A DNA stretch of 64,000 nucleotides from Octopus bimaculoides (GCF_001194135.2 NC_068994.1:17854558-17918557), one strand, 5' to 3'; positions 5,700 to 62,447 are shown, numbered from the stretch's first letter. Made by a program: numbers and translations. Notes: generated from the sequence alone by a model not told the origin.

Positions 5700-5781
5700 T
5701 TCTGAACGTAGTATGGATAGTACTACTTTGTCCCCACATCGTCTTGTGGACCTGGATCTATCTGATTTTGATGAACACCAG
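5700..5781 (+). CDS. copy 1 exon A (phase 2 to 0): [27 protein letters not shown]
   Basis: Long pyrimidine tract + CAG at 5697-5699; CAG|gtatag donor; paralogous exon at 54724-54802. Confidence 0.8.
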
Positions 5782-7732
5782 GTATAGAAAAGTATATTTG
5801 ATTTGATTTTGGTAGGGATCTTTTCCCACTAACAGTAACGGAGAAAGTGTAGATCTTTTTCCATTAGCTTTAGGATCACACACAAGCAATCTGGATGCAA
5901 TTCCTGAAATGGAAAATATCTACATTTACATTAAAAAAATTTTTTAAAGATTATAAATTTACAACAACAAAATGAATTAAATAAAATTCTTGTTTTAATA
6001 ACTGTCCCTCTTATTTCTTTATTGCCCACAAGGGGCTAAACATAGAGGGGACAAAGAAGGACATACTAAGGGATTAAGTCGATTACATCGATCCCCAGTG
6101 TGTAACTGGTACTTAATTTATCGACCTCGAAAGGATGAAAGGCATAGTCGACCTCGGCAGAATTTGAACTCAGAACGTAACGGCAGACGAAATACCGCTA
6201 AACATTTCGCCCGGTGTGCTAAAGTTTCTGCCAGGTCGCCGCCTTTTATAACTGTCCTCTGTCACACTCTAACCTCTCATCACCTAGCACTAAGCCACTT
6301 CCTCCAATGTCCCACCTCTCAAAGGATCTTTGTCTTGCAAGTTACTTGCTGACACCACCAGTGCTGGTACCACATAAAAAAAAGACATTCAGTCCACACT
6401 GTAAAGAGGTTGGCATTTGGAAGGACATCCAGCTGTAAAAACCATGCCAAAATAGACCTCACTAGTGCCACGTAAAAAGCACTGTCCACTCTGTAATGTG
6501 GTTGGTGTTAGGAAGGGCATCCAGCTATAAAAGCCATGCCAAAATAGACTGTGAAGCCTGGTGTAGTCTTCTGTCTAGCCAGCTCCTGTCAAACATTCCA
6601 ACTCCTGCCAGCATGGAAAACAAACGTTAGATGATTATGAATGTAGGACAATTTAACCTTTTGATAGCAGCCTGCCCAAAACTGCCCCAAGTTCTATGAT
6701 ACAAGCTTCTTGTTCTAAGATAACCTAAATTAAAGTTTTCCATCAAAATTGCATGTTATCAGGTTATTAAGAATGAAATGTCCGATTTTCTTATGCACCA
6801 TGTTTGACAGTCGTTAACTCTTATGTTTTATCCTGACAATTCTTTGTTTTACAATGTTGAAGAGTCACATCATCACTTTCTGAAATGCAGTTCATGATGT
6901 CTGATTATATTGAGTTTTCTCATGTAAATCAATTTTTGTGAACCCTTGGATAGATCAAAAATTCATGTTGTTTATGAATATGAGTTCTGTTGTGAAACCA
7001 GTGCATTCCAGACAGCTTGAAACATCAATGAGGCGTTTAGTGAAGATGTGGTTAACGAGCACACTATGTTAATGGTTTGAAAAGTTCCGGTCTAGTGACT
7101 TTATGGATCTTTCTGAATTGACGGGCACCACTTTTCATTTATGTTTTATGTAGTGTTTTTGGTACCGAAACACTTTCAAACTTCATATATTTCTATATTT
7201 TGTGTTATAGAACAGACAAAAATTTTTGTATTCGAAGTTATTTCATGTAAAAAATTATCGTATTTCGGTAATTTCAACCAATCACTGACGTCTATTTAGG
7301 TGAAAAGATTTACTGCTATGAAATATAAACAACATATTCTAGCGGTGTAATGGGATCTTTTCCCTTGAATAAAATTAGCCTGCTCGTGAAATTAACGTGC
7401 AAGTGGCTGAGCACTCCACAGACACGTGTATCCTTAACGTAGCTCTCAGGGATATTCAGCGTGACACAGTGTGACATGGCCGACCCTTTGAATTACAGGC
7501 ACAACAGAAACAGGAAATAAGAGAAAGTTGTGGTGAAAGAGTACAGCAGGGTTCGCCACCATCCCCTGCCAGAGCCTCATGGAGCTTTAGGTGTTTTCGC
7601 TCAATAAACACTCACAACGCCCGGTCTGGGAATTGAAACCGCGATCCTATGACCGCGAGTCCGCTGCCCTAACCACTGGGCCATTGCGCCTCCACACATT
7701 CACTCTTATAAATGTATATATATGTACATACA

Positions 7733-7773
<41 letters not shown>

Positions 7774-10700
7774 TTACTAGATTGCTAACATTTATTAATG
7801 GTTTTCCCCATTGTATTGATGTGCCGTTTTCTATCATTAAGTAAACTGCCGACACAGGTATGCTAGTATATATATATATATAAAATACACACACTCACAC
7901 ACAGAGCAGGCTTCCACACAGTTTCTGTCTACCAAATTCACTCACAAGTCATTTATTAGGCTGATAGTAGAAGACATTTGCCCAAGGTCTGTGCATTGAG
8001 ATTGAACCCAAAACCATATGGTTACAAAGCAAGCTTCTAAAAAACAACTGATACCTTTATTTATTTTTAATAGCATGTGCTAATTTTTATTTGAGATAAG
8101 TTATTTAACAAGCTAAAACACTGTTAATGTAATGATTGTTTTATTGTTTTGTCTTAATTTTTAGGTCAAGGGTTGTGATTCTTCCAAAGAGAATAGAAAA
8201 GTTGAAATTTTTGACGTCAGTTCTCATTTGGAAGCTCCTTCCAACTGTGAGTCTGGTTTTTCTGTATTGGAAATTACTTGCTCTGTGGAACAATCTCCTG
8301 TCAAAATAGTTCCCAACGAGAAGCCAAGGAAGAAGAAGTTGATGACAAAACAGTGAGTGCTTTTTTTTTTCTTTTTTTTTTTCCTTTTTTTTTAATGTAT
8401 TTTAAGTCCTGTTGGTGTATGGTGGTTAAAATCGGTTTCAAATTTTGGTGTAAAGCCAGAAATTTTGAGGTACAGGATAAGTCAATTACATCAACTCCAA
8501 CGCTCAACTGGCAGTTATTTTATTGACCCTGAAATATGAAAGTCAAAGTTGACCTTGGCAGAATTTGAACTCAGAACATTAGTGTTCAAAATGCTGCTAA
8601 GCATTTTGCCTGGCATGCTAACAATTCTGCCAGCTTGCCACTTAAATAGTGTGACTGAAATTGAGTAACTTATGGATAATCTATAATTTTGAATTTTTTT
8701 TTTTTTTTTCTCTCAATTTTATTGATTCCTAAATGGAACCATTTCCAAGTGTTTTATATTCTTTTACTAGTTTCAGTTAGCAAATAGATGGCCTCTTGAG
8801 GCTTTGAGTGGAGCAAACTGGTGATAACCTTGAAGGAGCAAAATCAGGACTATGTAAAGGATGTTCCAATATTTTAAATTTTGGTTTCTTGTAGATTTCA
8901 ACAAAGTAAAAACAAACTAACATGAGGATAGGTATTATCATACAACACAATGCCTTTGACAGTAGTCTTCAGTGTTTGCTTCAAATTGCAGGTTGCTAAA
9001 ATGAGTGCTCTGATAACACTCCAGTATGGATCATTGCAAGTGCAAAATCAACTGTCAGTATCACTTTTCCTAATGGGTGATTGTGGATTGTGTTTACACT
9101 CCATTCTCTGGAGTTTACTGTCCAGTAGTGATGTGTTCATGTTTTATCATCAGTTGTTTCTTTCCAAGACGGTTTCAGTTTTGTTACCATAGCCACCCAA
9201 TGATCGTGTCCTTAATTATCACCTGGTCTGCTATCAAAGCTCAGATTTTTCCCTAACCATAAAAATGGTCTTGAAATTATCTCCCCTTCTTTAAAAGTCA
9301 TTAAGATTTACTGCTAAGCTTTTGTTTTCTTTCTCCTACCAAGAGGGAAATTTTTAACTAATTAAATACATGTATATATCTTAGGTTTTTGTCTCTGCTA
9401 TTATGTTCATGTACATATGGATATAATTATCTATTGGATTTATCCTATAGTGTTGCTTAGTGAAATTGATCTGAAATCAGCCATTGCAAAGTGAATTCTT
9501 TAACTACAACTACACTATACAAACATATTGTCAGTGCCAGATCTGATCCACATTGAGTTTCTGGGAAGGTGAGGGTAAGATGGTTAATAACTTTGGCAAA
9601 GATCTTACCAATAAGAATGAAGAGGGATATATTCCAATGGATCTCTGGGATAATGTTACATATACAGATGCATAACTTGGAGATCAGGGAGTCTCACATT
9701 GGGAAACCACAGCTCTGGTACTATGGATATTTGGTTAGAATGCTGCAGGAAAGGATTGCAAAACAGATTTTTCAAGCTGAGTCAAGTGGTGAGAGACTTA
9801 GGGGTAGACCACAAGTGAGATGGTTGGATAATATCCACAATCACAGTTGGTTATTTTTGGGAATCCAACAGGAAAGTTTAATGACAGTTGTTTCTGATAG
9901 GACCCCTATGGAGAAGATGCCTAAGCACTCTAACCTTCCCAGGAATAATTAGCAGCAGAAATGGATGGATGGAAGTTACTTAACCACTTTGGTTGTTTCT
10001 GCAATCATTTGGATATTGTTGAGTACAGCAGTCATTGGAGTGTGGGGTATTCGTCAAAGGCTTCGTCAACGATTACACTGTGTTACCCAATTTTTGTCCT
10101 TGGGTGGCAGTTATTATTTCCTAGTTGCTTACGCCTAGAAAGAACGAAAAATGGTTAGCATTTTCTTCAAAATTTGCTTTTGTTACATTTATTCAAACCC
10201 TAAAGAATCCCTCTCAACACATGGTTTGGATGCTCCCCCACTACTCCTGCTCGTGATCAGAGATGCACATATTGTCAGTCACTAAGGGAAACGCTCAAGT
10301 GGTTACGGTCAAGCAACTGACAAGCAAATCTGTGATATTAAGCAGAATATTTGCTCTATCGATATTTCTGCTTCAGCAACTCAGCACTGAATTTGTCTGA
10401 AATGTAATGGAAAATAGGTCAGTTTGAAAACATTGATGTCCAGATGACAAAAGTAAAGTTTGAAGGGAATAGTAATTTTCTTTGATTTCTAGAAAGAAGC
10501 AAATAGGAAATAACACTTACTGACCAAAGACAAAATAAAAAATTAAAGTTTTGTTACATAGTGTCATCAGTGTACTAATTAACAATGTCATAAACAATAG
10601 CTTCAGCACAGTAAACAAGAAATTATGTTAACTAATGAGCTTGAACAAAAAGGCCAAAAGACTGCTAATATACAATAAGGCACAAGCATAGGTGCTTGTT

Positions 10701-13700
10701 AAAAATGTTCACTTTGCAGCCATTTGGTTGCATATCTATCCCACTGCGTGGTGCCATGGGTAAATGTCTTCTACTATAGCCTTCAGTTTTATATGGTAAT
10801 GAAACATGGACTTGGTACTGCCAACATGTGGTGGTAGGTGGTGGGGATGACACAAAACTAAGTTAGTTTAACCTAAGATGCATTTAGAAAATCATTATTT
10901 TAAAATATTAAATTCTTGATTAAAAAATTTTTTTTTTTGCATCACAATGTCATTTAAAATCATTGATTAGTTGTAAAATAATCCCTTTGTCTATATTATC
11001 AGTACATTGAAGTAATTGTAATGCTTGTTTTTTCTCTTTAATGAACTTTTCAGGAATATACCAAATATTTTAGTGGATGTTATATCACCACAATTTAAAA
11101 GTAAGTTAGTATTTTATATTTCCTGTAATGTCTTTGGTTTTGCTTTGGTGTTTTTTATTATATCTTATTAATTTCTTTGTTAAATCTCAAACAAATTATT
11201 GTAAATGAAAGTGCAGGCTATGCGGTTAAGAGGTTTTCTTCCCGACCACATGGTTTCAGGTTCAGTCCTACTGCATAGTGACGAAAGCAAGTGTCCTCTA
11301 CTATAATCCAAAGCTGACCAAAGCCTTATAAGTGAATTTTGTTGATGGAAACAGAAAGAAATTCTATTTGTGTTTATGTATACCAAGACGGCGATCTTTG
11401 TCTCTCCTTCTCTTGGCATCACATGATCATTGTAAATGAGCATCACCATCATACAAGCAGTGTCATTGATTTCCAATCTGTGAAAATGTGTCTGGCTATG
11501 GGAGAATACTATCTTACTTGATGATAGGTAGGGCATCCAGCTGAAGAAAATCTGCCTCAATGCATTCTGTCTAACCCATGTAATCACAGAAAAGTGGATG
11601 TTAAAACAATGGTGAGTTGTTGCTTCTAATGGATTATAATTTGGATGCTTCAAACCCCAAAAGTTCAGAATATGAGATTAGTACTTGATTAGGGTTTCTA
11701 TTTTCAGGTCTGGTTTGTAGTTGTTGGCAATAACTGCAACAGATTGATATGCTAAGCTTTTTATTTCTTTAAAATAGGCATACTAAAGTCACATTTTATT
11801 TCCTTAAAATATGGATACTAAGTTGACACTTTCTAGGTCCAATTGAATTGTATAAAAGATAGCAACAAGCATTCTATTTATGGCAATTAATTCACACTCT
11901 ACCAAGTAGCTGGTGGGCAGGAAATGTTGAAAATTACTTCAGTTTTTTAATCAATCTATTTCTTAAACTTATTTAGTAATTTGCAAAGTTTTACTCTATA
12001 GGTTTGACCATGTTAACTTGTCTTACTACAAGGTTTTTATTTGTAATAACACAAAACTGCAAATACATTAAACATGTACAAACACATCATGCAGGCAATT
12101 ACATACTGTAAATCACGTACAACATGAGTAACAATCAAGAATTTTGGTATTTCCTAGAGAGAAAAAAAAATAAGATGTTGGTTCTTCTACTACCTTTTCT
12201 TAACTGTATTAAATTAGATAATTCTAAATGTGAATATGACATGAGTTATTCTCTTTTCAGGTAATTTCAAAAAGAATACCAGTACAGAAAATAATAGCTT
12301 TATTAAACCTGATAAAGATTATGAACTAAAAGGGTATGTTGATTTTTTAAAAAATTTTCTTTTTCAAACGCTGTCTTATAACTTGCAAAACTGCTCACCT
12401 ATGGGTTTCATCTGTCTTGTCTCATGGATTGATTGCTTCCTGCCAATCTTTATACTATATACTGCTAGAGCTCTCTGTGACCAATAAACTCTGGTATTTC
12501 AATGTTCAGGTTTGTCTCTCCCACTCTTCATCTTATATATCAACAAGCTTCTTATCACCTCCAGTAATGCCCTCCAGAAGGAGAGAAAGCATTCTTCCCT
12601 CACCTTGTGCAGCCAAGCATCATTGATATATAATCTAGTTACTTTATGCCGAATCAACACTGACTCTATAAACAGAGACTTCAAAAATATCCTCTGTTGC
12701 CATTGCGCTAATCTTGTCTCCTTCAATAGCACAAGGACATGTTAATTATATGCATCAAGAAAATATTATACCCTTACATTTCTGGCTATATGAAATCTTG
12801 AGGGTTTCTGACTGTATGAAACCCTCAAGATTACTGCAAATGTTTGGTCTTCTTATTTAGAACCAGAAAATACTTTAGTCCCTAACAATTACTGGCCCTC
12901 TGCAAGTTTCAGGTGAAACCTACAATAGAGAATTATTCTGACATCTTGAACAATGCTGCTGTTCCACACGCTGATGACCTAAATCACATATAAAGGCCAC
13001 TTGACTGTTTGGCATGAAGATACTCATCAATACACTCTCCCCTTAGACATGCTGTCTCCTTTCTCTGCCTTTCCGAGGTTTCTGCTCTGAGCTGGCTGGT
13101 CTTGTGCCACTTCTATTTGGGCACTTACAATTTATCTTTCTCTCATCATATTGCGTGCAACAATCTCACACTAACCTCTATACCCAGAACTTTGCATTCA
13201 ATTTGTTGGCCCTCTGGAATTCTCTCCTTGAACATGTTTTACATGCAGCTGTCAACCCACAGCTGCTTTGGAAACATGTTAATTGCATCAATCCCAAGTC
13301 TCAGAGGACCTGTGTGGGACATGAGCACAAGCCATTTCCTTCACATTGAGACAAAGAAATTAAAATCTAAAGGAAAGCCTGGGTTTAAAAAGTTGCTTTT
13401 GAAATGATGCTATTTCTATATTAACTTTGTTCACTTTATTTTTTTCAGTGTAAAATCATCATCAAAACCTCAAAAGAAAGGTAGGCTTTCATTCTACTCT
13501 AGCTGTTATTTGCTATCTTCATCAATTTAGACCAAGTAATTTCATTATAAATTAACTAAGATTTTAATGTAAATTATATAAGACATTACAAACAGTAATT
13601 TGAAGCTGAAAAAGACAGCAGCATTGCTATAGGGGCTCCTGTCACCTGTTAATTCATAGATATATGATATCATTCTTATCTGTGTTTTTATCTTTTAAAT

Positions 13701-16700: not shown

Positions 16701-19700
16701 GGGTATGCTAGTAATTATAAGTAATAAGCTTATAATAATTATTTACCAAAATATATATTTATAATTGTGTATGTCTTTGTTTACACATCCATTATATGTT
16801 TAAGTACTAGAATATGTTTTTAAAAAAAGTTTTCTGCTTTTAGGAAAATACGTTGCATCTCGATACATGCAGTCTGCTCAGAATTTCAGAACTCGAACAC
16901 CTACAAAAAAGGCATGTTTATTTTTTTCACTTTCTTTCTTTATTGGAAAGACTGTTACAAAACATAGCTGTGCAAAAAAAAAGCGTTCTGTGTGAAGACT
17001 GTTTGCTACAGTATAGCACTATTCTATTCTAGTACCCCAGTGTGGATATTTCTTCAAAGAAAAAAAAAATCAGGCAATATAGGCGCAGGAGTGGCTGTGT
17101 GGTTAGTAGCTTGCTTACCAACCACATGGTTCCGGGTTCAATCCCACTGTGTGGCACCTTGGGCAAGTGTCTTCTACTATAGTCTCAGGCCGACCAAAGC
17201 CTTGTGAGTGAATTTGGTAGACGGAAACTGAAAGAAGCCCGTCATATATATGTATATATATGTATGTGTGTGTGTTTGTGTGTCTGTGTTTGTCCCCCAT
17301 CATCACTTGACAACCGATGCTGGTGTGTTTACGTCCCCGTAACTTAGCGGTTCGGCAAAAAGAGACCGATAAAATAAGTACTAGGCTCACAAAGAATATG
17401 TCCTGGGGTCGATTTTCTCGACTAAAGGCGGTGCTCCAGCATGGCCGCAGTCAAATGACTGAAACAAATAAAAGAGTAAAAAAGAGTAATGAAGTAGGTG
17501 CAAGGAGTGTAATATTGCATCTAGGTGAACCCAGAAGGTTGGGAGGAAATAAGGGACTCACAATGTTGAATGGAAAGCATTCAACTGTTTCACATCACAT
17601 GTAAACTTAAAGAGTACTCAAGCATTTAAGGCCTCAGCTGATATGGATGCAGACAGTTATATACAGAAGTGCCGATCACTTAAAATGGATGGAACTTGTG
17701 GAAGAGGGAGACCCAGCCTTATGAAGGAGATGACTGAGAACCAAGATATCCGGCGCATTGCTATACTCAAGAAGATCTGTTCACTACAGCAGAATTGATA
17801 CTGGTGTTGATGTTGCGTTAAAAGCACCCAATACACTCTGTGGAGTGGTTGGCGTTGGGAAGGGCATCCAGCCATAGAAACCATGCCAGAACCGACTTGT
17901 GGTTTAAATGGATGAGTGCTGAATGAAAGATACCAAGTGGGAGATGCCCATAGTAGATGATGTATGGCACCAGCACTAGATCTCAAGATATTGGGCCTCA
18001 CAAAATAAATGATATTGGATTGAGATGAATAAAGATTTGCTGTTAGCACACCTGTCCAATGCCAGCATGTTGACATGATGGTGTTGAAAATGTTTCAATA
18101 GATATAATATATTCGTTTTTGAGGTGCCTTTCTATTGATAAATATTGATAAGCAATGTAGGGGTAAGTTACCAACAATTTAAATCGATAAATCCAGTATT
18201 ATTATCATTCAGCTGTAGTGTTAGTTTTATGGAATGGCATACACATCTCGTATTTCTATGTTTAAAATATGTGCCTGAATCATGATCTCTTTCAACATGA
18301 ATAATAATTTCTTGCATTTGTATACTGCAGTTTGTTTTAATTAACCTAGTAATAACTGCCCTATGGCTCATAATGGCAACAGCTTTGGGAGTAATTGGAT
18401 CAATATAAGGTGATTAGCATTGAGCTTTGTTTTTAACACTAGGTTTAACCTTTATAGAAACAAATTTATATCAATGCTCCAGCATTGATAACAAGCTTAA
18501 CAGCTGAGACAGGATGCTGAACCAAAAAACTATGTGTATGGTTTCTTGTTTAACTTCAGGTCAATTCCATGATTAAAAGCATTCAAATCCTGATTATCTC
18601 CTCTTATTTTCAGATATACCATATGCAGGGTACACTTTACTATGTGTCTTGCTTTTTTTTTTATTTTTAAAGATAGCAGAGAGGATGATTTGAATACAAT
18701 TTGACTATTCCCTGCATGTTGTGTGATTGAAGAAAGAGTTCTTCATGGGTTGGTGGTAGTGTTTGGTTTTTGTCTCTCTTGTTTGTGTGTTAACCTTTGA
18801 GCATTCAGAAATTCTTTGTCAAATGTAATGATTGTTTATTCATCATCATCATCTAACAGCTGGATGCCCTTCCTAATGCCAACCTCTTCAAGAGTGTAAT
18901 GAGTGCTTTTATATGCTACTGGCATGGGTGCTGGTTGTGTGACACTAGTATCTGCCATGACTACAATTTAACTTGATGGATTTTCCTTCTGAAGCACAGA
19001 ATATTGCTAAAGGTCTCAGTCATTTATCATGCCTCTATGAGACCCAGTACTCAAAAGGTTCATTTCACTTGCCACCAGCTTGGATGCTAGTTCCACGACA
19101 CCAACATCGGCCACATTGCCTCCACGAGGCCCAATGCTTGAAAGGTCCTTTTTATGTGCCACTAGCATGGGTGCCAGTTATATGACACCAACAACAGCCA
19201 ATTGTTTTGAATTAATCATGCATTATCTTGTAGCTTTAAGATTTCAATAGTGTGTTTGTATATTTTTAGAATGACATTGTTGGCGTTAGGAAGGGCATCC
19301 AGCTGTAGAAACTCTGCCAAATTAGATTGGAGCCTGGTGTTGCCATCCGGTTTCACCAGTCCTCAGTCAAATCGTCCAACCCATGCTAGCATGGAAGGCG
19401 GACGTTAAACGATGATGATGATGATTGTAGCATAAATGTAAGCAGTTGAATCTGGTTGTTTTTAACATAAAACTGGTAGAATATTTGGGCCAGATTAAAT
19501 GCTAAAGAGTTAAATATTTGCCCTTCATCCCTCTAGAATGAATGAAATAATTTTAAAAACATAGGATTGATATATCTCCTTTATAAAATTTTAATTGATG
19601 CTTATGTCATTTCTTTTATAAGTAACTGTTTTTTTTTTTTTTTTTTTTTTTTCAGGAATCCAAAAGTGGTAATAATATGACTCTGACTGAAGCAAATTGT

Positions 19701-20606: not shown

Positions 20607-20640
<34 letters not shown>

Positions 20641-27190: not shown

Positions 27191-27273
<83 letters not shown>

Positions 27274-32985: not shown

Positions 32986-33056
<71 letters not shown>

Positions 33057-39679: not shown

Positions 39680-39859
39680 ATATATATAGTGTATAGATGT
39701 AATTAAATGTAGATATTTTATTTTAAATGAAAACATAGTTGAAAGTGCTGATGATTCATATTTGTAGAGTAAGTATATATTAAAACAAAGGCTGAAAAAT
39801 TTGGTATTATTTTTAATTCCTTGTTATATGTGTTTCATTGAAACACTTAAGAAAAACTG

Positions 39860-41850: not shown

Positions 41851-42007
41851 CTGAACCATGCAACTTCATATAAAAATTATAAAAATATAATAGGATTATT
41901 TTAAGCATTGAATGGTTATGAGGGTGCAACTGAGTTAAATAGGAACCAAGGTAAAAAAATGGTTGAAAATCACTGCTAAAAAATGGTTGAAAATCACTGT
42001 TTTAGAG

Positions 42008-44416: not shown

Positions 44417-44457
44417 ATGATGTCAAAGAAACCTTACTTCACCGATGGAATTCCCAG
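44417..44457 (+). CDS. copy 2 candidate first coding exon [13 protein letters not shown] (ends phase 2)
   Basis: ATG in a locally CpG-richer segment, strong AG|gtacgt donor, phase fits 49808. No homolog in the window to confirm it. Confidence 0.55.
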
Positions 44458-45233: not shown

Positions 45234-45264
<31 letters not shown>

Positions 45265-51200: not shown

Positions 51201-54200
51201 AGTATTAATTGCTTGTTGAGATGGCCCCATTTACCTATATGTTTATTATGATGGTTGTTTACAATATAGAAAATACAACTGCTTTGAGTTGCTTGTGTAC
51301 ACATGTTGTTTGTTGTTGCAATAAACAAATAATCTTTAGTTCCATGGTCCATAGTGTAGATAGTAAATTCATGTATGTGTGGCTACTGGAGAGAGAAAGA
51401 GAGAGCTGGTCTAGGCAGGTTGAGAACACAAGCAGCGTGTTGTCCCACATATAAAGGTATTACTTCTCCATTGGTACTGGAAGAAGGAAGGAAGAGGTAA
51501 AGTAGATGTGCTCTCTGATCAGAACCAGCAACCAAAGAGAATGAAAGCAATTTGGCTTTGGTTATTTACATTGTTCTTCACCAAACTAGGTTCAAGCTAA
51601 AACAAAGGATTTCCCAAATCTAATCAGCTTTGACCTATGTTTGACTCAAAAAGGGCTAAGAAGTCAGTTCATTTTCACAAATTTCCTAGTGCAACAGGCT
51701 AGAACAATTGGCTGAGGACTTGTAAGAAAATTATGGATTTGATTTTAAATCCTGGTTTAGACATTTTGTGGCAGTTTTCTTCACATGCACACAAATTGTT
51801 TCTTTCTCTTTCTAATTAAAAAAAAAAAATTTTTTTGAAATGATTAAATCATCCTTTTCTGGTTTTTGAAAGATCACCTTGTATTCCTTTACCATTTGTT
51901 CCTTCAGAGTCCCAAAAATGCTTTGAGCCTTACTTTAAATTATTACTAGGTTTGAGATTGTGTGTTTTTTTTATCCAGTCTCCACTCTAGGGCATTGACA
52001 ATTTCTCTATTTCGCAGATAAATTCTTGTTGTTTCTTTGTCATTATTGTTGACTGCATAGCAACAGAATTTTTTACTGCATTTTAAACTCATTTTTTTCA
52101 TCATCATCATGATCGTTTAACGTCTGCTTGCCGTGCTGGCATGGGTTGGATGGTTTAACTGAGAGCTGGGAGGCTGTATTAGGCTCCAATCTGATTTGGC
52201 AAGGTTTCTATAACTGGATGCCCTTCCTAACACCAACCACTCAAAGTTGTAGTGAGTGTTTTTTATGTGCCACTGGCACAGGAGCCAGTCAGGTGGCACT
52301 GACATAGGCCATGCTCAAATGGTGCTTTTTACATGCCTCCAGCACGGGTGACAGTCAGGCAGCACTGGCATTGATCAAGCTCAGTGTTCCATGAAAACAT
52401 GTCTGACCATGGAGAAATATTATCTTGCTTTGGAACAGGTAAGAGGTTGATGACAGGAAGAGCATCAAACTAGAAAAATCTACCTCGCTCAATTCTGACT
52501 CGTGCAAGCATGAAAAAATGGATATTAAAATGATCACACACACACACACACACATGTAAATCACCTTTTCATTTTATCTTTTTCAAGGAACTTTGGACAA
52601 GGACCAATCCTTTGGTTCCACTTTGGATAATCGGCGTGAAACTATTGGTTCTTCAAAAATAGGTTCTTTTGTCTCAAGCAGCTCTAATTATAATAGAAGA
52701 CATACAATAGTGCCAACAAAAGCATATGAAATTCGCCATAAAATTGCAACTGGAGCACTTTTCTCTCAGAACAGGTAGGGTTTGGATTTTTTTAAAAGAT
52801 GCATTAAACTAATTGAGCTAAATAAAATTATTGAATTAAAGAAAAAAATGCTAAAGATTTCTTAATATTGGTGTTTGTTCAATCTAGTTTCTGTAACACT
52901 AAGTAGTTTACAAAAGAAAAACTTGACAGATAAAATGATAGTGAATGAGGTAATTTTGCAAGAAACCACAGCAGATATCTCCAGTGAAGGGAACTATATA
53001 GCAAGCAGAATCAAATGAGTTTGCCCAGATATATAATCTGAGGCTTGTAATAAAAAATGAACTCAATACTCATGAATCTTCCTAAGTTGTTGTGTTGTTT
53101 TGTTGTTTAGATTTGACCCTCCGATCTTTCTTTAGTTGCATTTAAAATCATCTTTAACCCTTTTATAACCGGTTTTTATTTCAGTTAATTTTGAAAATAA
53201 GTAATTTGTGAAAATAGTTTTATTATTATTAAGCTGGAGTCTGAAACAAAAATTACTAGGAAATTTTACTGGAAGGTTTTGAGGTCACTTTAAAAACAGA
53301 GTTTGTCTCATAGAACCAGGCACAGTTTCAAGCAGGTTGCTATCAAAAGGGCTAATGTGTCTTGCTCTTTTCAAGATGATAGTTTGTAATTTGTGTGAAA
53401 TTTGGCTGCTTTTTCTCACAGTCTCGATTATCATAGTGACTCTCAGCATGCTTGAGTTATTAAGAGATGTAGACATCTTTTTATATTAAATCAATAATAT
53501 AACTTACATATTTAACACACACAATCTTCTTTCATGTGAGCCTGGGACCCTTTAAAACCTTTCCTTTCACATGTTTAGTGGCAGACTGCTCTAAGGACTG
53601 GACAAAAGATATTCCATGTAAACATACTGTTGTCCACAACACAAACTTGTGTGTTTTCTTCCAAATTATTTCAGTTGTTTAATTCTGTAACATTTGAATA
53701 AATCTGTACAATACCACCATGGAAAACAGACATATGATTTGTTACATCAATTTATTTCAGTAATTCAGAAATTTACTCACTTATTTAAATAAGATGATGG
53801 TAGTGCCTGTGACAAAAAAAAAAAAATACCATTACACATTGTAAGGTAGTTAGTGTTAGGAAGGGCATCCAATCATAGAAAACAAAATATGCTGACACTG
53901 ACACTGGAGCATGGGGCAGCTCTGCTGCTTACCAGATCCTATCAATGCATTTGGTCCATTCCAACATGGAAAATAGACCTTAGATAATGACGATGGTGAA
54001 GATAGGATGATTTCCTTGTCGGATTTAGAACTTATAGTATTTTTTGCTTTTTATATTTTTGTGGAACACTAGAAATAAAGGACACTGTATGATGGTGACA
54101 CTTGCTTACAAGTATCACACAGTATCAAGGCAAGGGGACAGTAACCCATGCACAAGCATATATTCATACAATATGGTTTCTTTCAGGTTCCATCTACGAA

Positions 54201-57200
54201 ATCTAGGATTTAGTTGACTTAGGGCTATAACAGAAGATACTTGCCATGCAATGGGACTGAACCCCAAACCCTGTGGTTGGATATTAATGTTTATGTTACT
54301 TTTGTATTAATTACTCTTTTATTTGTTTCAGTTATTTGACTGTGGCCATGCTAGAACATTGCCTTGAAAGGTTTTTTTCAGTCAAATGAATTGGCCCTAG
54401 TACTTATTCTATTGGTCTCTTTTGCTGAACCGCTAAGTTACAGGTTTGTAAACACACAAACACCGGTTGTCAAGCAATGATAGGGGGACAAAGACACATA
54501 CACATACACACATATGATGGGTTTCTTTCAGTTTCCATCTATCAAATCCACTCCAAATGCTTTGGTTGGCGTGAGGCTATAGTAGAAGACACTTGCCCTA
54601 GGTACCATGTAGTGCGACTGAACCCGGAAGCATGTGGTTGGGAAGAAAGCTTGTTATCACACCACCACACCTGCACCTATTAATGTATTTTTCTAATTAA
54701 TGTATTTTTCTCTTATTTTCTAGTTATGAATCTAGTAAGGATAGAATTGCCACACCTTCACGTCGCCGAGACACTGATCTGTCTAATTGTGATAAACGGC
54801 AGGTACAGAAGAATTTTTTGTTTTCTTTTGCTTAATTTTAGTGTGAATTTATTTCCCTTAGTGAGTAACCTTTAGGATTGCACTCAGGTAATCTGGGTAC
54901 AATTCCTAATAAGGAAAATATTTAAATTTAGAATTTTCTTGTAAATTTTACATTAAGAAATTGAATATGGTGTTCTTCTGAAGAATTTCTGGAGTAACAT
55001 TATTCAACAGGGTGCGTAGCTCAGAGATCAGGGAGTCTCTCCAGGTTGAGCTGTTACTTCTCAGCATTGAGAGGTCACAACTCCAGTACTGTGATTAGAA
55101 TGGCACAAGAAAGAATCTCAAGACATTCTTGAAGCCAAAGATACCTAGGGGTAGACCAAGAATGAGATGGTTGGATAATAACCACCTTAATTGGTCATAC
55201 TTGGGAATCCAGCTGGAAAATCTGATGATGGTTGCTTCGGATAGAACCCTATGGAGGAGGTATCTGTGAACTCTATCCCCATGACTCTTCCAGGAATAGT
55301 GGATAGAGAAGATGGGTAGATGGAAATAGATATGGAATAGGGTACTTTAGATTTTAAGGAAGTTAAAGATATGTTAGAAAAAGTGTTGGTGATTTCAAAT
55401 GATAATAGGGGGCTAAATGTCATTGTTTTTCTTTCTTATGATCATAATGACTCTGATAAGTGGATCATGTGTTCTACCCTCCATCTCACTTTAGTGTTTC
55501 AGTTGTTGTTGTTGTTGTTGGCACTCTGTCGCTTACGACGTCGAGGGTTCCAGTTGATCCGATCAATGGAACAGCCTGCTCGTGAAATTAACGTGCAAGT
55601 GGCTGAGCACTCCACAGACACGTGTACCCTTAACGTAGTTCTCGGGGATATTCAGCGTGACACAGTGTGACAAGGCTGACCCTTTGAATTACTGGCACAA
55701 CAGAAACAGGAAGTAAGAGTGAGAGAAAGTTGTGGTGAAAGAGTACAGCAGGGTTCGCCACCATCCCCTGCCGGAGCCTTGTGGAGCTTTAGGTGTTTTC
55801 GCTCAATAAACACTCACAATGCCCAGTCTGAGAATCTAAACCGCGAGCCTATGACTGTGAGTCCACTGCCCTGACCACTGGGCCATTGCGCCTCCATTAG
55901 TGTTTCAGTACCAGTGCTGTAATAAGCTAGTCTTTGTTCATTTGTTCATGAATGTTTCTTTTTCCATGTCAGCATGGGCTGGAAGGGGAATTATTTGGGA
56001 CAGGATCTATAACTGGATGCTCTTTCTGTTACTAACTCTCACTTGTTTATCAAATAAAAGACTTTTTATTCTACAAGCCTTTCAAAGCATAGAGTGAAAC
56101 CTTGTGGTTGGTATGGCAATTTATTTTTAAGAGCATGTGATACTTTTATCATTGCTGTTGTAATTAATGTTAGGATGTTTTGCCTTAATTTTCAGTGCAA
56201 GAATTGTGATTCTTCTAAAGAAAACAGGAGACCCGTTGAAATTTTATACAACAGTTGTCATTTGAAGAATCCTACATCTGTTTGTGATTCTGATTTTCCA
56301 AATGATAAACCTATTTCTAAATTGGAAGCCTCTCATTGTTTGAGTGATTCTTCAGGCAAAATATCTTGTAACAGGAAGCAGAGAGAAAGGTTGACAACAA
56401 AACAGTGAGTGATTTTTTATTTTACCTTTTCATTGTTTTGAGGTTAGTATTTTAATTAAAATTAATGTTTACTATGTAACCAATGGATAATCTATAATTT
56501 TAAGTTTCTTTCTTTGTATCTCTCAATTTTATTAATTTATGAATGGAACTATCTATATTCTTTTATTAGTTCTATTTTCTATTATTAGTTCTATATTCTT
56601 TTATTAGTTTCATTTGAAGTTTGATATGTATTCAACTCAAATATTTGAAGGTGGTACTAGGGTACCATTGTCAAATATTTTAGTTGATTATAATAACCTT
56701 AATACTTTATTTCATTATGGTACATTATTGATTCTAGTTTCTTGAAGTACCTTTTTGATGTAAAGAGGTGTGACTCAACACCAGTATATACTCATATAAA
56801 CGTCCACACACATCCACATATGCCTATCAGAAATCCACTCACAAGATGCTGTGACAATCACAGAAGATACTTTTCTGTTGAGCTAGGAACCATATACTTA
56901 ACCACATGCTGGAAATTGGAATTGAAACCAGACTGCCAATTATTAGCATTATTGTCTCTGATATCAGAGTGATCTGCACCAAATTGGAAGAATGAGTTGG
57001 TAATAAGAGTACATATTAAGTAGGAAAAGTTAGTTGACTTGCAATATGGTATCCTGAGAAGCAAGCCCAAACTGGTCAATATTTGTTGTTGGACTGAGGG
57101 AACCTTTAACCCATTAGCATTTAAAGTGGCTGTATCTGACCCAAATATTCTACCTGTTTCACATTCAAACTGGCTGGATCTGGCTTCTTACACCTCCCCT

Positions 57201-60200
57201 AGAATGTCATTCTAAAAATAATCAATCACATCTTCAAGATATTAAAGCTATAGCATAATGCATGATAAATTCAAAACATAATTAAACAAGCATTATATTT
57301 GACAGAACAATTTGAATGCTAAAAGGTTAACATACCCCATCTGGTTTCATCCCAGTTCTTGGATAAGAACTGGGATGAATTGATGCATAGCATGGCTAAT
57401 CTCACTTAGAAATTACCTGACAGGAAGATATCCTTAAAAAGTTTAATAGAAATGGTTAATGTCAACTTTACTTTGGTGATATATTAGTATCACAGCTAGG
57501 AATTTTTGACTAGATTTTAACATCTGTTCTTGAATGTCTTGTGGAAAGACAAGTTTCTTTGGTTAGAAAGTCTGGAAATTAACTGAGAAAATGATCTCCC
57601 TGAGAGGTTTGGGAAGAGTTGATCGATGTTCAAATCACTTTGGTGATATACTACCACCTGATCTGAGAAAGTCTGATTTGATTTTAATATCTGTTCCTCT
57701 AAAAAGGTGGTGAGCTAGCAGAATTATTAGCATGCTGGACAAAATGCTTAGCAGCATTTCATCCATCTTCATGTTCTGAGTTCAAATTCTGCTGAGGTTG
57801 ATTTTGCCTTTCATCCTTTCAGAGTTGTTTAAATAAATACTAGTTGAACAGTGGGGTCAATGTAATTGACTTACCCACTTCCTCGAAATTGCTGGCCTTG
57901 TGTCAAATCTGAACGTTGTCTCAAAATGCTGAAGCTCATGCAGAGATTTCTTGAAGGAAATGTAGTGGTGGCTATTGTTTGTCAAGCATGTGTCCTCACA
58001 ACTCCTCTCTTTTTAACTGAGCTACAATTCTTTGTGAAGGGATAGGTTGTTGGCATCAACAGTGTTGCCATGCATTTATACTCTCTTTCAGTTGGGTAAT
58101 TCAGTCAGTGGAATGTCAACTTTTGTATTTTATAGGTGACTGAAATCTATGAGCAACAAGATCCTTGGGAATATTCTAAGAAGGATGGCTTACAACTATA
58201 TCACATTGAATGCACTAGTTCTCACCCAATCATCGAAGTTAAGCAACGTCAAACCTAGTTAATACTTAGTAATTGACTTACACCCTTCTCCTAAATTGCT
58301 AGTCTTTTGCCAAAATTTGAAATCTATATTCTGAGAAGGGTGTGTAGAATATTTTTTCCTGGATGATTTCCAGGTTTGGAATTATGGATAATTACAAGAG
58401 TTCTTGGTTTGGCAGTACTACCAAAAGTGATTATCAATTCAAACTAAGCCTCACAGACACATTGTTGTTGTCAGTAAGACTCTTCTAGTATACTGATATA
58501 CTGAAAGAATGTCAAAGCCATCAGTATCTGCAGTTAGTTGCTTTGTTATGTCAAAGGAAGACCATCATATACAATGGACCTGTCTGTTGTTCGAGTTCAC
58601 TGTGAAGATTATTCCATCACGTTTTTTTGGCAATGAAGGGATAGTTAGTATTGTTCTGCATTGTAGTTATGATGAAAGATCTAGTTATGTCAGACGAAAT
58701 TGAATGATATGTGAACAGGACTTTCTTGTGAAACAAAAATTAAGAATGCCACTACATAAAGTATGAGTTCCATTAATGCTGATAAAGGATATGAAAGAAA
58801 ATAGTATGACAACATTTTATAAACAAACTTTGAAAGTGTCAAGTTGTTTGGTATTTTACAGACAAGAAAGTAAATTTCAAATGCAGTATAGCTGTGGAAA
58901 CAGCAGAAAGATTGGCTATTTTTACCTTTATATGATGGAAAAAAAAGTCACCAGCAATTCAAAATTTACTTTCTTGTCTGTAAAATAGAAAATAGTATGT
59001 GTTTCTTAATTTTTTTTTTAACTCTGTGTCTTTATAACTGGGGTTTAAAAAGCTAGGTTTTTAGTGGTATTGATATATCTTTATTAAATCCTTTTTTCAA
59101 TTTATCTTTTTTTTAGGCAGACTTGTGAAAAATTAACACCAAAATCTGAAAAAAAAGGTATGTCTGAATTCTACTCTCTACTATAGCTTTTTATTTTCTT
59201 CATAAGAGATAGGCCAAGAGTTTCATTATTAATTAACTGCAAAGATTTTAATGCAAATATTATAAGACATTATAAAACAACAATTTGAGATTAAAAGAAG
59301 CAGCAGGCCCACCAATGGTACGCAAACCATGTAACTATCTGTCACTTGGCAAGTGATAGATATGTGGTACCAGTTTCATCTGTGGGTTTGTTAATTGTTT
59401 ATATTTCAAATTGGTGTTTGCATTTTTTTCTTTACTACTTTCAACCAGAGAGCTTTGACCATGCTGGGGCACCGCTGTTATTTTTGCTACACTCTCACTA
59501 CTTGAAACCTCCTCTGATATGTGGCATGTGGTGAATGAGGGAGTTTGGTGTTACTGCCTTCATCTGCATTTCCTCCTCCGAGGTAGGTTCATCCAGAACT
59601 CTTGACAGGAGAAGATCCAGTTTTATTTTGAAGACACCTACATCCATCCCTTGTAGGACTTTCAGGTTTTTAGGGAGGATACTGAAAAGCTGTGGACCCT
59701 TGAAACCCAAGCTGTTGCAGAATCTGATCCTGTATCCTGATGCCAATGTTGGGATCTTTGGCATGTTTAATAACAAATGGTTTCATGTTTTATTGAGTTT
59801 TAGAGTTAATCATTGTCTAGCATCCCACATCAAACATGTCCAATTATCAAAAAGTTAGATGCCCTGTTTTTGTCCTATTTACTTGCTTGAGTGTCTACTC
59901 TGATATTTAAGCAGGATATTAAGGCCTGGAAAAGCCCTTAATAAATGATTAAAAAAATAAATTCTTTCTTTTTTTTGGTTTTCATTATTTTATGTTTTTG
60001 TTGTTCACAATTTTGTTTTTTAGCTCATTATTAAATACTTGTAGAAAGACTTCCTTCTGGGCAGTTTTCTACTAGTTGCTAAATGATATTCATTTGATTT
60101 CGAATTTGTGTAATTTTGCTGATGTTTTGTTTAATTTTAATTTGTATCATCTAATAGTACTCACTTGCTCAGTAAATAAATCAAAGGTGTCTTCATCATC

Positions 60201-62447
60201 ATTTAACATCTGTTTTCCATGCTGGCATGTTAGGCAGTTTGACCATTGCTGGTAAGCCGGAGAGCTGCACCAGGTTCCAGTTGTCTGTTTTGGCTTGGTT
60301 TCTATGGCTGGATGCCCATCCTAATGCCTACCACTTTACGGAGTGTACTTGGTGTCTCTTATGTGTCACTGGCATGAGTGCCCTTTTATGTGTTACTGGC
60401 ATGGGTGCTTTTTACATGTCACAGCATAGGTGCCTTTTACTTGTTACCAACACAGGAGCCTTTTACATATTGGCACTGCTCATAACCAAAATTTCACTCT
60501 GCTTGATGTGTCTTCTCAAGCAAAGCAAATCCCTAGAAGTCTTGGTCATTTGTCATCGAAATATGTCCCACCAATGTTGTCTCCTCATAACTTTCTGAGA
60601 AATGAATATTTGTTGATGAAATATTCTACAAATATGTTTCAGATGGTGTAGATTATATCAGAATTCAATGTGAAAAAACAGAGGGGTATGACTGATGTTT
60701 TTCACTCATACATTTTAATGAATTAATTATAATTATGTTGAAAAAAAAAAAAAATTACCTTTGAGTCCCATATGATTCCTGCTATTTCTAGCATATTAAA
60801 CGACAGCATAGAAGATGAGATCTAATTTTTCTCACTGTATTAAGATGTGATGTAAAGGTATATGAAGGCATGAATCAATAAAATATCTCTGGACAATGTA
60901 AATTGAATAAAGTCTACCTGTTGGTATTGCAGAGTTAATAAAGTTTGTATAATAGTGTTGGAAACTCTTAAAACTGTCTGAATTTATGTCTGTGTTACCA
61001 GGTTCTAATATGCTTAAACCCTGTTGTCGTAGAAATATTTTCAAACCTGTTAACTGCAATGATGCATCATTTTCCTTGTTGGATGAAGATCAGGTAAATA
61101 AAGAAGTAATACGTTTTTGTATTTGTACTGTTATGCATATCTTTCTCTTTTCATTTTTAGTTTATTTTGATATCTTTGAAGAAGAAAAAGGGGCAAATAA
61201 AGTAGTTATGTTCGATCTGTTATAGCTATGTAGTTCTGTGAAGGCATGTGGCTAAGTGGTGAGGGCATTTGGCACATGATTGTATGGTCATGAGTTCAAT
61301 TTTTGGCAGTGTATTGTGTCCTTGAGTAAGAAACTTTATTTTTCATTGCTCCAGTCCTGTCAGCTTGCAAAAATGAACTGGCACTTCAATGGGCCAGTTA
61401 TATCGCATTCTATGTCATGCTGAATCTAAGAACTATACTAAGAGTACATGTGTCTGTGGAGTGCTCAGCCACTTGCACATTAATTTCATAGGTGGGCTGT
61501 CCTGTTGATTGGATCAGCTGAAATCCTTGTCATTGTAACCTATGAAGTGCCAGTTTTTATTTTTTAAAGTTATGTAGTCCTAATTATACTAATTAAGTCA
61601 GAGAAACATAAGTAGGTGAATTAACTGGTTGTCAATCCGATAACCAAAGATTTGACTGTCAATATCCTATAAATGGTGCCTCGTTATGTTAAATGACCAA
61701 TACACTTGTAGCAGGAATATCTACTGGAGCATTCCAGTGGGACTTGTCATGCCACTAATCAATCCATTCGATCTCCCTTCTTATATCAGCTGTTGAACTC
61801 TTTACCTGTGTAAATATCTCCTCTTTTGTTGAGAGTAATGGCACTACACATTTTGTTTACTATTAGAAAAATAAATGATTTTCATTTAAAATTTCAATGG
61901 AATGCATGTTCTTTTCAGTCAACATGATACCAATCATTACCTTGCTGATGGACACCTAAAAATATCTTATGCACTAAACATTGAAATAGTAAAAAATTAT
62001 CTTGGCATGGTAAAGAGGATCAACAATGTATAATTGATGTATGCTTTGTTTATCTATGATACTGAATTAAAATCCTCTCTTGAATATAATATTCATTTCA
62101 AATTTTGGCACAAAATGATTTTCTATAATTATTATTTAAGGAGAATATTTAAATTTTACATTTGATATAAAACTACTAAATTTCTTTTTTTTTTTATTCA
62201 AAATATACAATTTCATCTTCATAATGTCTTTTCTTTTTAAATTATAATGTATAATCTTAATTTAAACATGCTAATCATGCTTGAAATTACATGTACTTAT
62301 ATATTTTTTTTCATTCAATTGTATATCTAGCAAAAGACACGTTTCAAACAAAAAGATTTAGATATGTTATACAACAATTACATCCAAACCCTTTATCTTG
62401 ATAAAATGGTGCTGAAAGCAATTCAGAAGAGAGAAGCTGATGCGGCA
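44417..62447 (+). CDS. HAUS8: HAUS8-like paralog, copy 2 (3'-partial). Exons: 44417-44457, 49808-49890, 52588-52774, 54724-54802, 56196-56404, 59117-59157, 61002-61093, 62331-62447
   Basis: Eight exons with canonical AG/GT sites join into 849 nt = 283 uninterrupted codons ([20 protein letters not shown]...[29 protein letters not shown]). Five of them are collinear homologs of copy 1 exons A, B, E, H and I, with homologous intron flanks. Confidence 0.72.
45742..46415. repeat. large fold-back palindrome with telomere-like (TTAGGG-variant) blocks
   Basis: Arms 45742-46043 and 46064-46415 are reverse complements with a loop of about 20 nt; a single-arm relative lies at 7140-7375. Confidence 0.9.
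46890..47075. repeat. short hairpin / MITE-like inverted repeat
   Basis: GTGCAATAGG..GCTGGCGAACGGGG (46890-46958) versus CCCCGTTCGCCAG..CCTATTGTAC (47008-47075). Confidence 0.85.
47225..47705. repeat. diverged inverted repeat, arms about 210 bp
   Basis: The + and - ORFs give near-identical peptides ([17 protein letters not shown] versus [17 protein letters not shown]). Confidence 0.8.
48380..49012 (+). mobile_element. mariner transposase C-terminal fragment (pseudogenised)
   Basis: [24 protein letters not shown] and [16 protein letters not shown] motifs with stops and frameshifts. Confidence 0.88.
49030..49400 (+). mobile_element. degenerate LINE 3' fragment (RTE-like)
   Basis: [17 protein letters not shown] pattern with stops. 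Confidence 0.5.
49808..49890 (+). CDS. copy 2 exon 2 (2 to 1): [27 protein letters not shown]
   Basis: TCAG acceptor, TAG|gtatgt donor; phases bridge exons 1 and 3. Confidence 0.6.
52588..52774 (+). CDS. copy 2 exon 3 (1 to 2): [20 protein letters not shown]...GALFSQN
   Basis: Pyrimidine tract + AAG acceptor, CAG|gtaggg donor; matches ORF 52593-52778. Confidence 0.7.
54310..54678 (-). mobile_element. SINE family A, reverse orientation
   Basis: Reverse complement of the family A head and tail. Confidence 0.75.
54724..54802 (+). CDS. copy 2 exon 4 (homolog of A): [26 protein letters not shown]
   Basis: ttttctag acceptor, CAG|gtacag donor; the downstream intron also aligns with about 5865-5925. 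Confidence 0.8.
55010..55300 (+). mobile_element. RTE-type LINE 3' fragment
   Basis: [12 protein letters not shown]; aligns with 9670-9950. Confidence 0.6.
55513..55895 (-). mobile_element. SINE family C, full length, with (AAC)n tail
   Basis: Same head and body as 39314-39679. Confidence 0.85.
56196..56404 (+). CDS. copy 2 exon 5 (homolog of B): [17 protein letters not shown]...RERLTTK
   Basis: ttttcag acceptor; CA|gtgagt donor identical to that of exon B. Confidence 0.85.
58188..58269 (+). pseudogene. 3'-truncated 5S rRNA pseudogene or 5S-derived fragment
   Basis: GCTTACAACTATATCACATTGAATGCACTAGTTCTCACCCAATCATCGAAGTTAAGCAACGTC aligns with the recalled 5' two-thirds of invertebrate 5S rRNA, including GAAGTTAAGC. 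Differences are mostly transitions. Confidence 0.8.
58742..58803 (+). pseudogene. decayed pseudo-exon homologous to copy 1 exon D, with a nonsense codon
   Basis: Ungapped alignment to the 3' part of exon D (about 70% identity by eye). GAA has become TAA at 58757-58759, and the CAG acceptor at the homologous position reads GTG. Confidence 0.65.
59117..59157 (+). CDS. copy 2 exon 6 (homolog of E): [13 protein letters not shown]
   Basis: Poly-T + AG acceptor, AAG|gtatgt donor; flanks homologous to those of exon E. Confidence 0.75.
59285..59850 (-). mobile_element. CR1/L2-like LINE 3' fragment
   Basis: ORF 59498-59776(-) [38 protein letters not shown]. Confidence 0.7.
61002..61093 (+). CDS. copy 2 exon 7 (homolog of H): [30 protein letters not shown]
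   Basis: CCAG acceptor, CAG|gtaaat donor; matches ORF 60986-61225. Confidence 0.8.
62331..62447 (+). CDS. HAUS8: copy 2 exon 8 (homolog of I): [39 protein letters not shown]
   Basis: CTAG acceptor, GCA|gtaagt donor; 117 nt, the same length as exon I. Confidence 0.9.

Follow-up and report, generated by a model that had tools for sequence, protein, structure and literature searches.

An old tandem duplication of a HAUS8-like augmin gene in Octopus bimaculoides

Introduction

Augmin nucleates branch microtubules in spindles and neurons, and its subunit 8 (HAUS8) carries the main microtubule-binding arm, which is under Ran/importin regulation. Plants possess several AUG8 paralogues of this subunit, which are thought to yield augmin complexes with different cell-cycle roles. 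Here, a 64,000-nucleotide (nt) stretch of the Octopus bimaculoides genome (GCF_001194135.2, NC_068994.1:17854558-17918557), referred to below as the window, is described. It carries two head-to-tail genes on the + strand, LOC106880657 (copy 1) and LOC106880652 (copy 2), both of which bear the NCBI label "uncharacterized". Comparative analysis supports the assignment of both to the HAUS8 family, and the pair very probably arose by an old head-to-tail duplication of the whole octopus HAUS8 gene, after which both copies were kept as protein-coding genes. For vertebrate HAUS8, the main microtubule-binding site has been located in the disordered N-terminus, and the importin-binding sequence KKKDKR (residues 23-28) lies just ahead of SRYLQ (PMC10323247). 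A literature search for octopus or cephalopod HAUS8 duplication found no paper; what is new is the lineage-specific tandem HAUS8 paralogue pair, the two genes themselves being already publicly annotated, unnamed.

A whole-gene duplication in tandem

The window corresponds to O. bimaculoides chromosome CM046614.1 (GCA_001194135.2), with 0 mismatches over 29,584 shared nt. It is AT-rich (G+C about 36%) and contains many interspersed repeats as well as six N runs. Self-BLASTN, sensitive regional BLASTN and finally pair-by-pair alignment were used to define exon pairs. Amid hundreds of matches between repeat families, one collinear chain on the + strand links about 5.7-23.1 kb with 54.7-62.5 kb and comprises the five pairs A, B, E, H and I (Table 1). 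Each of these ten exons is bounded by an AG acceptor and a GT donor, the phases are identical between copies, and all exonic indels are multiples of three (3 in A; 3, 3, 18 and 3 in B; 9 in E; 3 in H; none in I). The intron sequence flanking the paired exons is 59-85% identical over 100 nt on each side.

The coding exons of both copies were then fixed with a small spliced mapper that required canonical splice sites. With this procedure, four full coding sequences, those of both copies in O. bimaculoides and in Octopus vulgaris, were rebuilt exactly and with canonical splice sites throughout. Copy 1 consists of 13 coding exons (A-M) spanning 5713-34627 and encodes 495 amino acids (aa). Copy 2 consists of 12 coding exons, starts at 44417 and encodes 458 aa; its first eight exons lie within the window. 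Nine exons (A, B, E, H, I, J, K, L and M) are common to both copies in the same phases; exons I-L are of equal size and the other shared exons differ by in-frame indels only. Homology between the copies is detectable from about 100 nt upstream of exon A to just past the stop codon.

These results bear out a first-pass annotation of the locus, which had proposed five collinear exon pairs in the same phases, at offsets shrinking from 49 to 39 kb and with homologous intron flanks. Its reading of the locus as a whole-gene DNA duplication, not a retrocopy, is likewise upheld, as introns occupy the same positions and phases and the copy-2 exons J-M were found on the same chromosome record. The claim that both copies are open holds as well: A-B-E-H-I is an open frame in each, and the NCBI proteins could be rebuilt exactly from the DNA. 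Finally, the adjacency of the copies is seen independently in the gap-free O. vulgaris assembly, where the same pair occurs.

The exons of copy 1 beyond exon I were reached with a local profile built from human and Xenopus HAUS8 (the human sequence being identical to 7sqk_H), which was run against all six-frame open reading frames (ORFs) of the window. The top match is a + strand ORF at 32.4 kb, with collinear ORFs at 33.6 kb and 5.6 kb, and these matches led to exons J, K, L and M and the stop codon. In exon H of copy 1, an in-frame donor at 21254, upstream of the annotated one, is the equivalent of the copy-2 donor. A coiled-coil-looking ORF at 23520-23627 was considered as an exon and rejected, as it reads as a retrotransposon fragment. 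Two observations concern the annotation of copy 1 in other species. Exon J is intact at the O. vulgaris copy-1 locus (27421-27540, 90% protein identity) yet missing from the annotated protein, which is an annotation omission and no real difference. In the Octopus sinensis gene LOC115219270, isoform X2, at a place equivalent to about 19.8-21.3 kb of the window, reads the second half of exon G and the whole of exon H in a shifted frame and ends early, which suggests alternative splicing inside exon G with a truncated product.

Neighbourhood, age and assembly

In O. vulgaris, the gene order is a fumarase gene (-), copy 1, a 7.9-kb spacer, copy 2 and an ankyrin-repeat gene (-). The spacer measures 9.8 kb in O. 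bimaculoides, and the ankyrin-repeat gene follows copy 2 there too. Since the same gene pair is found in the same O. vulgaris neighbourhood, the duplication predates the split between the two species. Per-exon p-distances between paralogues amount to 0.32-0.36 (exons A, B, H and J) as compared to 0.03-0.15 between orthologues, which makes the duplication several times as old as the species split. A 107-aa unspliced ORF from a public read-set assembly clearly resembles copy-2 exon B (about 70% identical by eye), a hint that copy 2 may also be present in a more distantly related octopod.

Copy 2 could in principle be an assembly artefact that stems from an uncollapsed haplotype or from a mis-join at one of the gaps, and the several N gaps of the locus, along with the perfect direct repeat of 137 nt next to the 10-N gap (29294), might be taken in this sense. 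The chance of this is practically negligible: the paralogues are only about 64-80% identical at the DNA level over most of their length, a divergence that rules out a haplotig or haplotype artefact, their exon content differs, and each has its own orthologue, in matching order, in the O. vulgaris assembly, which is free of gaps. The 137-nt repeat itself (29011-29147 and 29157-29293), which abuts the gap and lies inside a transposon-like ORF of copy-1 intron J-K, looks like a scaffold-join artefact and not like a biological feature.

All four gaps within the genes are intronic and none touches an exon, and the orthologous O. vulgaris loci contain zero N, the same exon series and no additional coding segment. 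No reading frame relies on sequence hidden in a gap. Both flanks of the gap at 25900 map to adjoining positions of the matching O. vulgaris intron, and the right flanks of the gaps at 14558 and 46558 map into the expected O. vulgaris introns. The left flanks of these two gaps and the flanks of the gap at 29294 found no placement in O. vulgaris and are lineage-specific transposon sequence.

Assignment to the HAUS8 family

A stitched copy-1 protein of 343 residues retrieved five database proteins, all named "uncharacterized" or "hypothetical": the products of O. bimaculoides LOC106880657 and LOC106880652, two O. vulgaris orthologues and a copy-1 isoform from O. sinensis. Pfam scans of the stitched octopus proteins matched no family, PF04484 (QWRF) included. 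Human HAUS8 itself matches neither a QWRF nor a HAUS8 model in Pfam at E <= 10, there being no HAUS8 model in that database; therefore, the Pfam check cannot discriminate for animal HAUS8. An octopus-only profile identified 60 relatives among 1.84 billion representative proteins, and the top named relatives are called HAUS8 (from Mytilus coruscus, Batillaria, Tegillarca and Owenia). Neither the search with the stitched protein nor that with the octopus-only profile yielded a third octopus relative.

Against solved structures, the octopus-only profile reached HAUS8 at E = 2; weak matches to ubiquitin, otulin and EspG in the structure searches were rejected as chance. A family profile of 59 sequences retrieved human 7sqk_H (2.9e-36), Xenopus 8at3_H (5.5e-35) and plant 9nba_H (3.9e-14), with no other solved structure below E 0.01. 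In addition, matches to a cephalopod-free profile (E-values calculated for a database size set to 1.8e9) reached 1e-63 for copy 1 (residues 10-485), 1.6e-38 for copy 2 (residues 124-448) and 2.4e-31 for human HAUS8, in each case collinearly and over nearly the whole length.

It might be argued that the octopus genes belong to an unrelated coiled-coil family whose motifs resemble HAUS8 by chance, as they match no Pfam entry, carry the NCBI name "uncharacterized" and reach only E = 0.11 and E = 2 in direct structure searches. Such an origin is very improbable: the silence of Pfam is that of a database without any HAUS8 model, the family profile has no significant solved structure other than the human, frog and plant augmin subunit 8, and the cephalopod-free profile places octopus and human proteins in one collinear family. 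Both octopus genes are accordingly supported as HAUS8 family members by profile comparison. The HAUS8 identity given in the first-pass annotation was thus retained through molluscan relatives, and the Pfam HAUS8/QWRF route that it had proposed gave no match. As a practical outcome, two "uncharacterized" octopus genes can be named HAUS8-like.

Motif architecture of the two copies

Both copies were aligned with seven molluscan and annelid HAUS8 proteins. Copy 1 presents the complete ancestral motif series (Table 1). Its basic patch and SRYMQ segment in exons E/F align with human KKKDKRVQGGRVIESRYLQ. The DLDLS sequence of exon A was considered as a counterpart of the vertebrate PDLDLSAIN motif and rejected, as it aligns with LDLSD in the extended N-terminus typical of lophotrochozoan HAUS8; the counterpart of PDLDLSAIN is located in copy-1 exon G. 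In copy 2, SRY(L/M)Q is absent, exon F being gone with no remnant in either species, and the exon-E patch KSEKKG stays. The motif at the start of the coiled coil, LYARYLQW.YL (the plant QWRF motif), is matched in exon I of both copies with W replaced by T. The family profile aligns to residues 18-338 of 7sqk_H; within the complex, it is the C-terminal coiled coils of HAUS8 that are resolved.

Exon B also contains the sequence CDSSKENR (8177-8200 in copy 1, 56208-56231 in copy 2), which includes a KEN triplet and is invariant in 5/5 octopus proteins from three Octopus species; the remainder of the exon is only about 45% conserved between copies. A role of CDSSKENR in degradation or docking is conceivable.

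Exon loss in copy 2 and the origin of its first exons

Exons C, D, F and G are absent from copy 2, and in either copy exon B joins E, and E joins H, in phase. As exons C and D together comprise 120 nt and F and G 336 nt, both losses keep the reading frame. A remnant of exon D persists in the copy-2 intron B-E with an in-frame TAA and without its acceptor, which shows a loss from copy 2 as opposed to a gain in copy 1. A stretch at 56668-56703 might be left over from exon C but is too short for a call, and remnants of exons F and G, sought in the copy-2 intron E-H of two species, were not found, the search returning poly-T matches only.

The first three exons of copy 2 precede exon A; the first-pass annotation did not list them, although they fall within its span. 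A counterpart upstream of copy 1 was found neither in the gap-rich O. bimaculoides region, which includes 3.8 kb of N immediately before the window, nor at the O. vulgaris locus, which is free of gaps and was covered as far as the fumarase gene. It is conceivable, albeit doubtful, that the losses were complementary: an ancestor with exons 1-3 and A-M would have given rise to a copy 1 that lost exons 1-3 and a copy 2 that lost C, D, F and G, and both copies would be needed to cover the ancestral N-terminal modules. The exon-D remnant shows that copy 2 did lose an exon, the start of copy 2 lines up by eye with molluscan MASKRxLYKP..RRPLAQGRL, and the gap-free O. vulgaris locus is devoid of exons 1-3 upstream of copy 1. 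However, the HAUS8 profile lends no support to homology of exons 1-3, the O. bimaculoides region in question is full of gaps, and copy 2 could just as well have recruited these exons later.

Divergence mosaic and gene conversion

The two copies are far more alike in their C-terminal than in their N-terminal half, with a synonymous divergence of 0.23 for the C-terminal part versus 0.96 for the N-terminal part. The paralogue p-distance is 0.12 in exon I, 0.10 in exon K, 0.02 in exon L and 0.19 in exon M. Intron sequence flanking exon L is 95-98% identical between copies over 100 nt on each side. Among four sequences, six sites between -128 and +254 from the exon L start group the copies within a species versus one that groups orthologues, and immediately outside of this tract orthologue-grouping sites occur every few bases. 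This pattern identifies a tract of gene conversion, about 380 bp long and with sharp boundaries, that surrounds exon L and was active after the split of O. bimaculoides and O. vulgaris; the high paralogue identity of this segment is attributed to it. The partner tract in copy 2 lies past the window end. Exons K, M, B and I display the orthologue pattern only.

Exon I harbors a further peculiarity, as its final 87 nt, together with the first 12 nt of the intron that follows (22977-23075 and 62361-62459), contain no informative differences between both copies in two species, in a surrounding sequence that is only about 63% identical. This 99-nt stretch is hard to explain by coding constraint alone; it could be under nucleotide-level constraint (e.g. 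a splicing signal) or could represent an old, short conversion tract. Altogether, the locus is a clean, small case of mosaic evolution after duplication, with in-frame loss of exon pairs, fast N-terminal divergence and a conversion tract with sharp limits.

Selection on copy 2

Between O. bimaculoides and O. vulgaris, the ratio of non-synonymous to synonymous substitution rates (dN/dS) reaches 0.58 in copy 1; in copy 2, where 82 non-synonymous differences stand against 22 synonymous ones, it is 0.93 overall and 1.07 in the C-terminal half. The coding divergence of copy 2 (104/1365 nt) approximates that of introns (0.06-0.07). Taken together with the missing exons C, D, F and G, these near-neutral values would agree with a duplicate on its way to a pseudogene, which has lost functional N-terminal exons, drifts neutrally and is only apparently intact. 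Several features make this decay improbable. Neither species shows a break in the copy-2 frame of about 1,370 nt, and random placement of the 104 substitutions leaves it open in only 1.4% of trials (probability 0.014). Copy-2 introns accumulated about six frameshifting indels per kb between the species, which corresponds to about eight expected in the coding sequence, and 0 are seen. All splice sites of copy 2 are canonical, both exon losses preserve the frame, and a neutral copy would long since have been broken, the duplication being several times as old as the species split. Copy 2 therefore appears, as judged from its sequence, to be a protein-coding gene under weak or diversifying constraint with a clearly maintained frame, and no pseudogene.

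A possible exchange of augmin subunits

The C-terminal coiled-coil half (exons I-M), whose HAUS8 equivalent is the region built into augmin in the solved complexes, is retained by both copies, and the octopus proteins differ chiefly in the N-terminal half, which is the microtubule-binding part in vertebrate HAUS8. On this basis, both octopus proteins may enter augmin through their common C-terminal half. Octopus would then have two augmin versions, a canonical one with copy 1 and an altered, faster-evolving one with copy 2, whose microtubule-/importin-binding arm would be without the SRYMQ and D.SAI segments. A split of augmin function between the copies, such as mitotic versus meiotic or neuronal, was suggested in the first-pass annotation and would be speculative, the sequence revealing only the mainly N-terminal difference. 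The idea that octopus swaps HAUS8 paralogues between two interchangeable augmin versions, one of which lacks the SRYMQ arm, is put forward as a tentative proposal that is more likely wrong than right; local gene conversion might in this case keep the common assembly interface compatible.

Several points weigh against the overall interpretation of the locus. The step to two complexes is pure inference. Family membership rests on intermediate sequences, since copy 1 and human HAUS8, when compared directly, match only marginally (E = 0.11, over a collinear stretch of 183 residues). ALDTTRH, the motif best conserved across the family (ALDTTRHQI in other molluscs, ALDTTRHEL in human), is present at its proper position but in degenerate form, as VLDTVPH in copy 1 and VLDKASH (EVLDKASHQI) in copy 2. 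Several basic patches persist in copy 2, including KSEKKG in exon E, so the loss of SRYMQ need not abolish microtubule binding. Exons 1-3 of copy 2 resemble the molluscan N-terminus MASKR..PLAQGRL by eye in one alignment, a homology to which the HAUS8 profile gives no support. Furthermore, the dN/dS of copy 2 is near neutral, and its difference from that of copy 1 is not significant (a hand estimate from small counts).

Repeats and features of the window

Two decayed transposase remnants of the mariner/Mos1 type are present on the + strand, one in copy-1 intron J-K (31024-31679, with an HTH_48 match at 31024-31221) and one in copy-2 intron 1-2 (48400-48897, with Transposase_1 and DDE_3 matches). 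A family resembling short interspersed elements (SINEs), of about 400 nt and 75-91% identity, occurs at 11-404, 17079-17481, 33044-33278, 54311-54680 (-) and 63391-63946, and a second family of 85-93% identity at 7377-7730, 21849-22138 (-), 39315-39715 and 55513-55896. These two families account for spurious "duplicate" matches outside of the gene duplication. Three palindromic stretches (195-703 nt, arms 78-82% identical) at 45737-46423, 46890-47075 and 47221-47702 flank the gap at 46558-46884 in copy-2 intron 1-2 and may be foldback-type elements. A C-terminal tail typical of retrotransposons without long terminal repeats (non-LTR; ..GRPR..W.D.V..DL..) was recognized by eye in ORFs at 26176-26541 (-), 9557-9949 (+), 13720-14106 (+) and 55099-55266 (+), for which Pfam gave no match. 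The ORF at 26.2 kb and the adjoining SINE-like repeat lie within about 840 nt of inserted sequence that O. vulgaris lacks and that also includes the gap at 25900. An Rfam scan of the window detected no families.

Table 1. Coordinates of exons, exon pairs, motifs, gaps and the conversion tract, counted from the first nucleotide of the window
Feature	Position	Strand	Remarks
Copy 1 exon A	5713..5781	+	annotated ATG 5713; acceptor AG just before 5700
Copy 1 exon B	8165..8352	+	last 2 nt are part of a split codon; contains CDSSKENR
Copy 1 exon C	11054..11100	+	aligns with molluscan PQPNFDDS motif; no copy-2 counterpart
Copy 1 exon D	12261..12333	+	missing from copy-2 coding sequence
Copy 1 exon E	13449..13480	+	32 nt, basic patch
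Copy 1 exon F	16844..16911	+	HAUS8 SRY(M/L)Q motif; no copy-2 counterpart
Copy 1 exon G	19656..19923	+	end aligns with TSTP..DASAI and vertebrate PDLDLSAIN; no copy-2 counterpart
Copy 1 exon H	21166..21266	+	annotated donor 21266
Copy 1 exon I	22947..23063	+	coiled-coil start; aligns with family LYARYLQWLYLD motif
Copy 1 exon J	27037..27156	+	
Copy 1 exon K	32435..32573	+	aligns with HAUS8 ALDTTRH; top HAUS8-profile match among six-frame ORFs of the window
Copy 1 exon L	33631..33781	+	98% identical to copy-2 exon L
Copy 1 exon M (last coding)	34513..34627	+	stop TGA 34625-34627
Copy 2 coding exon 1	44417..44457	+	carries ATG
Copy 2 coding exon 2	49808..49890	+	
Copy 2 coding exon 3	52588..52774	+	no counterpart found upstream of copy 1
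Copy 2 exon A	54724..54802	+	
Copy 2 exon B	56196..56404	+	
Copy 2 exon D remnant	58742..58823	+	intron B-E; 72% identical to copy-1 exon D
Copy 2 exon E	59117..59157	+	spliced straight to B and H
Copy 2 exon H	61002..61093	+	
Copy 2 exon I	62331..62447	+	last copy-2 exon in the window
Copy 2 exons J, K, L, M	65728-65847, 67028-67166, 68320-68470, 70222-70339 (window-equivalent)	+	past window end, same chromosome record
Exon pair A (copy 1 / copy 2)	5700-5781 / 54724-54802		offset 49,024
Exon pair B	8165-8352 / 56196-56404		
Exon pair E	13449-13480 / 59117-59157		
Exon pair H	21166-21254(21266) / 61002-61093		
Exon pair I	22947-23063 / 62331-62447		offset 39,384
Copy 1 motif LDLSD	exon A		
Copy 1 motifs V.V.DAS, SPV.VV	exon B		
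Copy 1 motif PQPNF-like	exon C		
Copy 1 basic patch and VPSRYMQSA	exons E/F		
Copy 1 motif KTSTP..DASAI	exon G		
Copy 1 motif LYARYLQ.LYLD	exon I		
Copy 1 motif LDTTRHQ-type	exon K		
Copy 1 C-terminal coiled coil	3' of exon K motif		
Gene-conversion tract	33503..33885	+	exon L with upstream (about 128 nt) and downstream (about 100 nt) intron sequence
Assembly gap	14558-15371		copy-1 intron E-F
Assembly gap	25900-26136		copy-1 intron I-J
Assembly gap	29294-29303 (10 N)		copy-1 intron J-K
Assembly gap	46558-46884		copy-2 intron 1-2

Comparison with known subunit 8 systems

Taken on sequence alone, the locus represents an ordinary, if tidy, lineage-specific tandem duplication. If the proposed exchange of paralogues is true, a long-kept pair with a common assembly half and a differing arm would provide a natural experiment on the tuning of augmin-microtubule attachment.

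The closest non-cephalopod relatives are the proteins of Mytilus coruscus (CAC5410796.1), Batillaria (KAK7488309.1), Lottia (XP_009052368.1) and Owenia (CAH1783295.1), and molluscan and annelid HAUS8 relatives are found at E = 1e-24 to 3e-28 with the octopus-only profile. Copy 1 aligns with these proteins from LDLSD to the C-terminus. Molluscan and annelid HAUS8 comprise 600-700 residues and start with MASKR..PLAQGRL, an N-terminus that copy 1 lacks and that is at best degenerate in copy 2.

Vertebrate HAUS8 (HICE1; 7sqk_H, 8at3_H) belongs to the same family by profile search and shares its motif order with copy 1: a basic patch with SRY(L/M)Q, D.SAI, LY..Y.Q.LYL, LDT..H and the C-terminal coiled coil. 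In comparison, octopus and other molluscan proteins add a long N-terminal extension (exons A-D in octopus), ALDTTRH is degenerate in both octopus copies, and octopus has two genes, of which copy 2 is without the SRYMQ and D.SAI segments.

The plant AUG8/QWRF family, including EDE1 (AUGMIN subunit 8, 9nba_H), joins the octopus proteins in one family by profile comparison (E = 3.9e-14). Its expansion is independent and consists of many dispersed paralogues, whereas the octopus genes form a two-gene tandem array with local gene conversion. Plant AUG8/EDE1 would be the closest precedent for paralogue swapping of augmin subunit 8. If true, swapping in octopus would be the animal counterpart of plant AUG8/EDE1 switching, and the locus would represent, after plants, a second independent example of paralogue diversification of augmin subunit 8.

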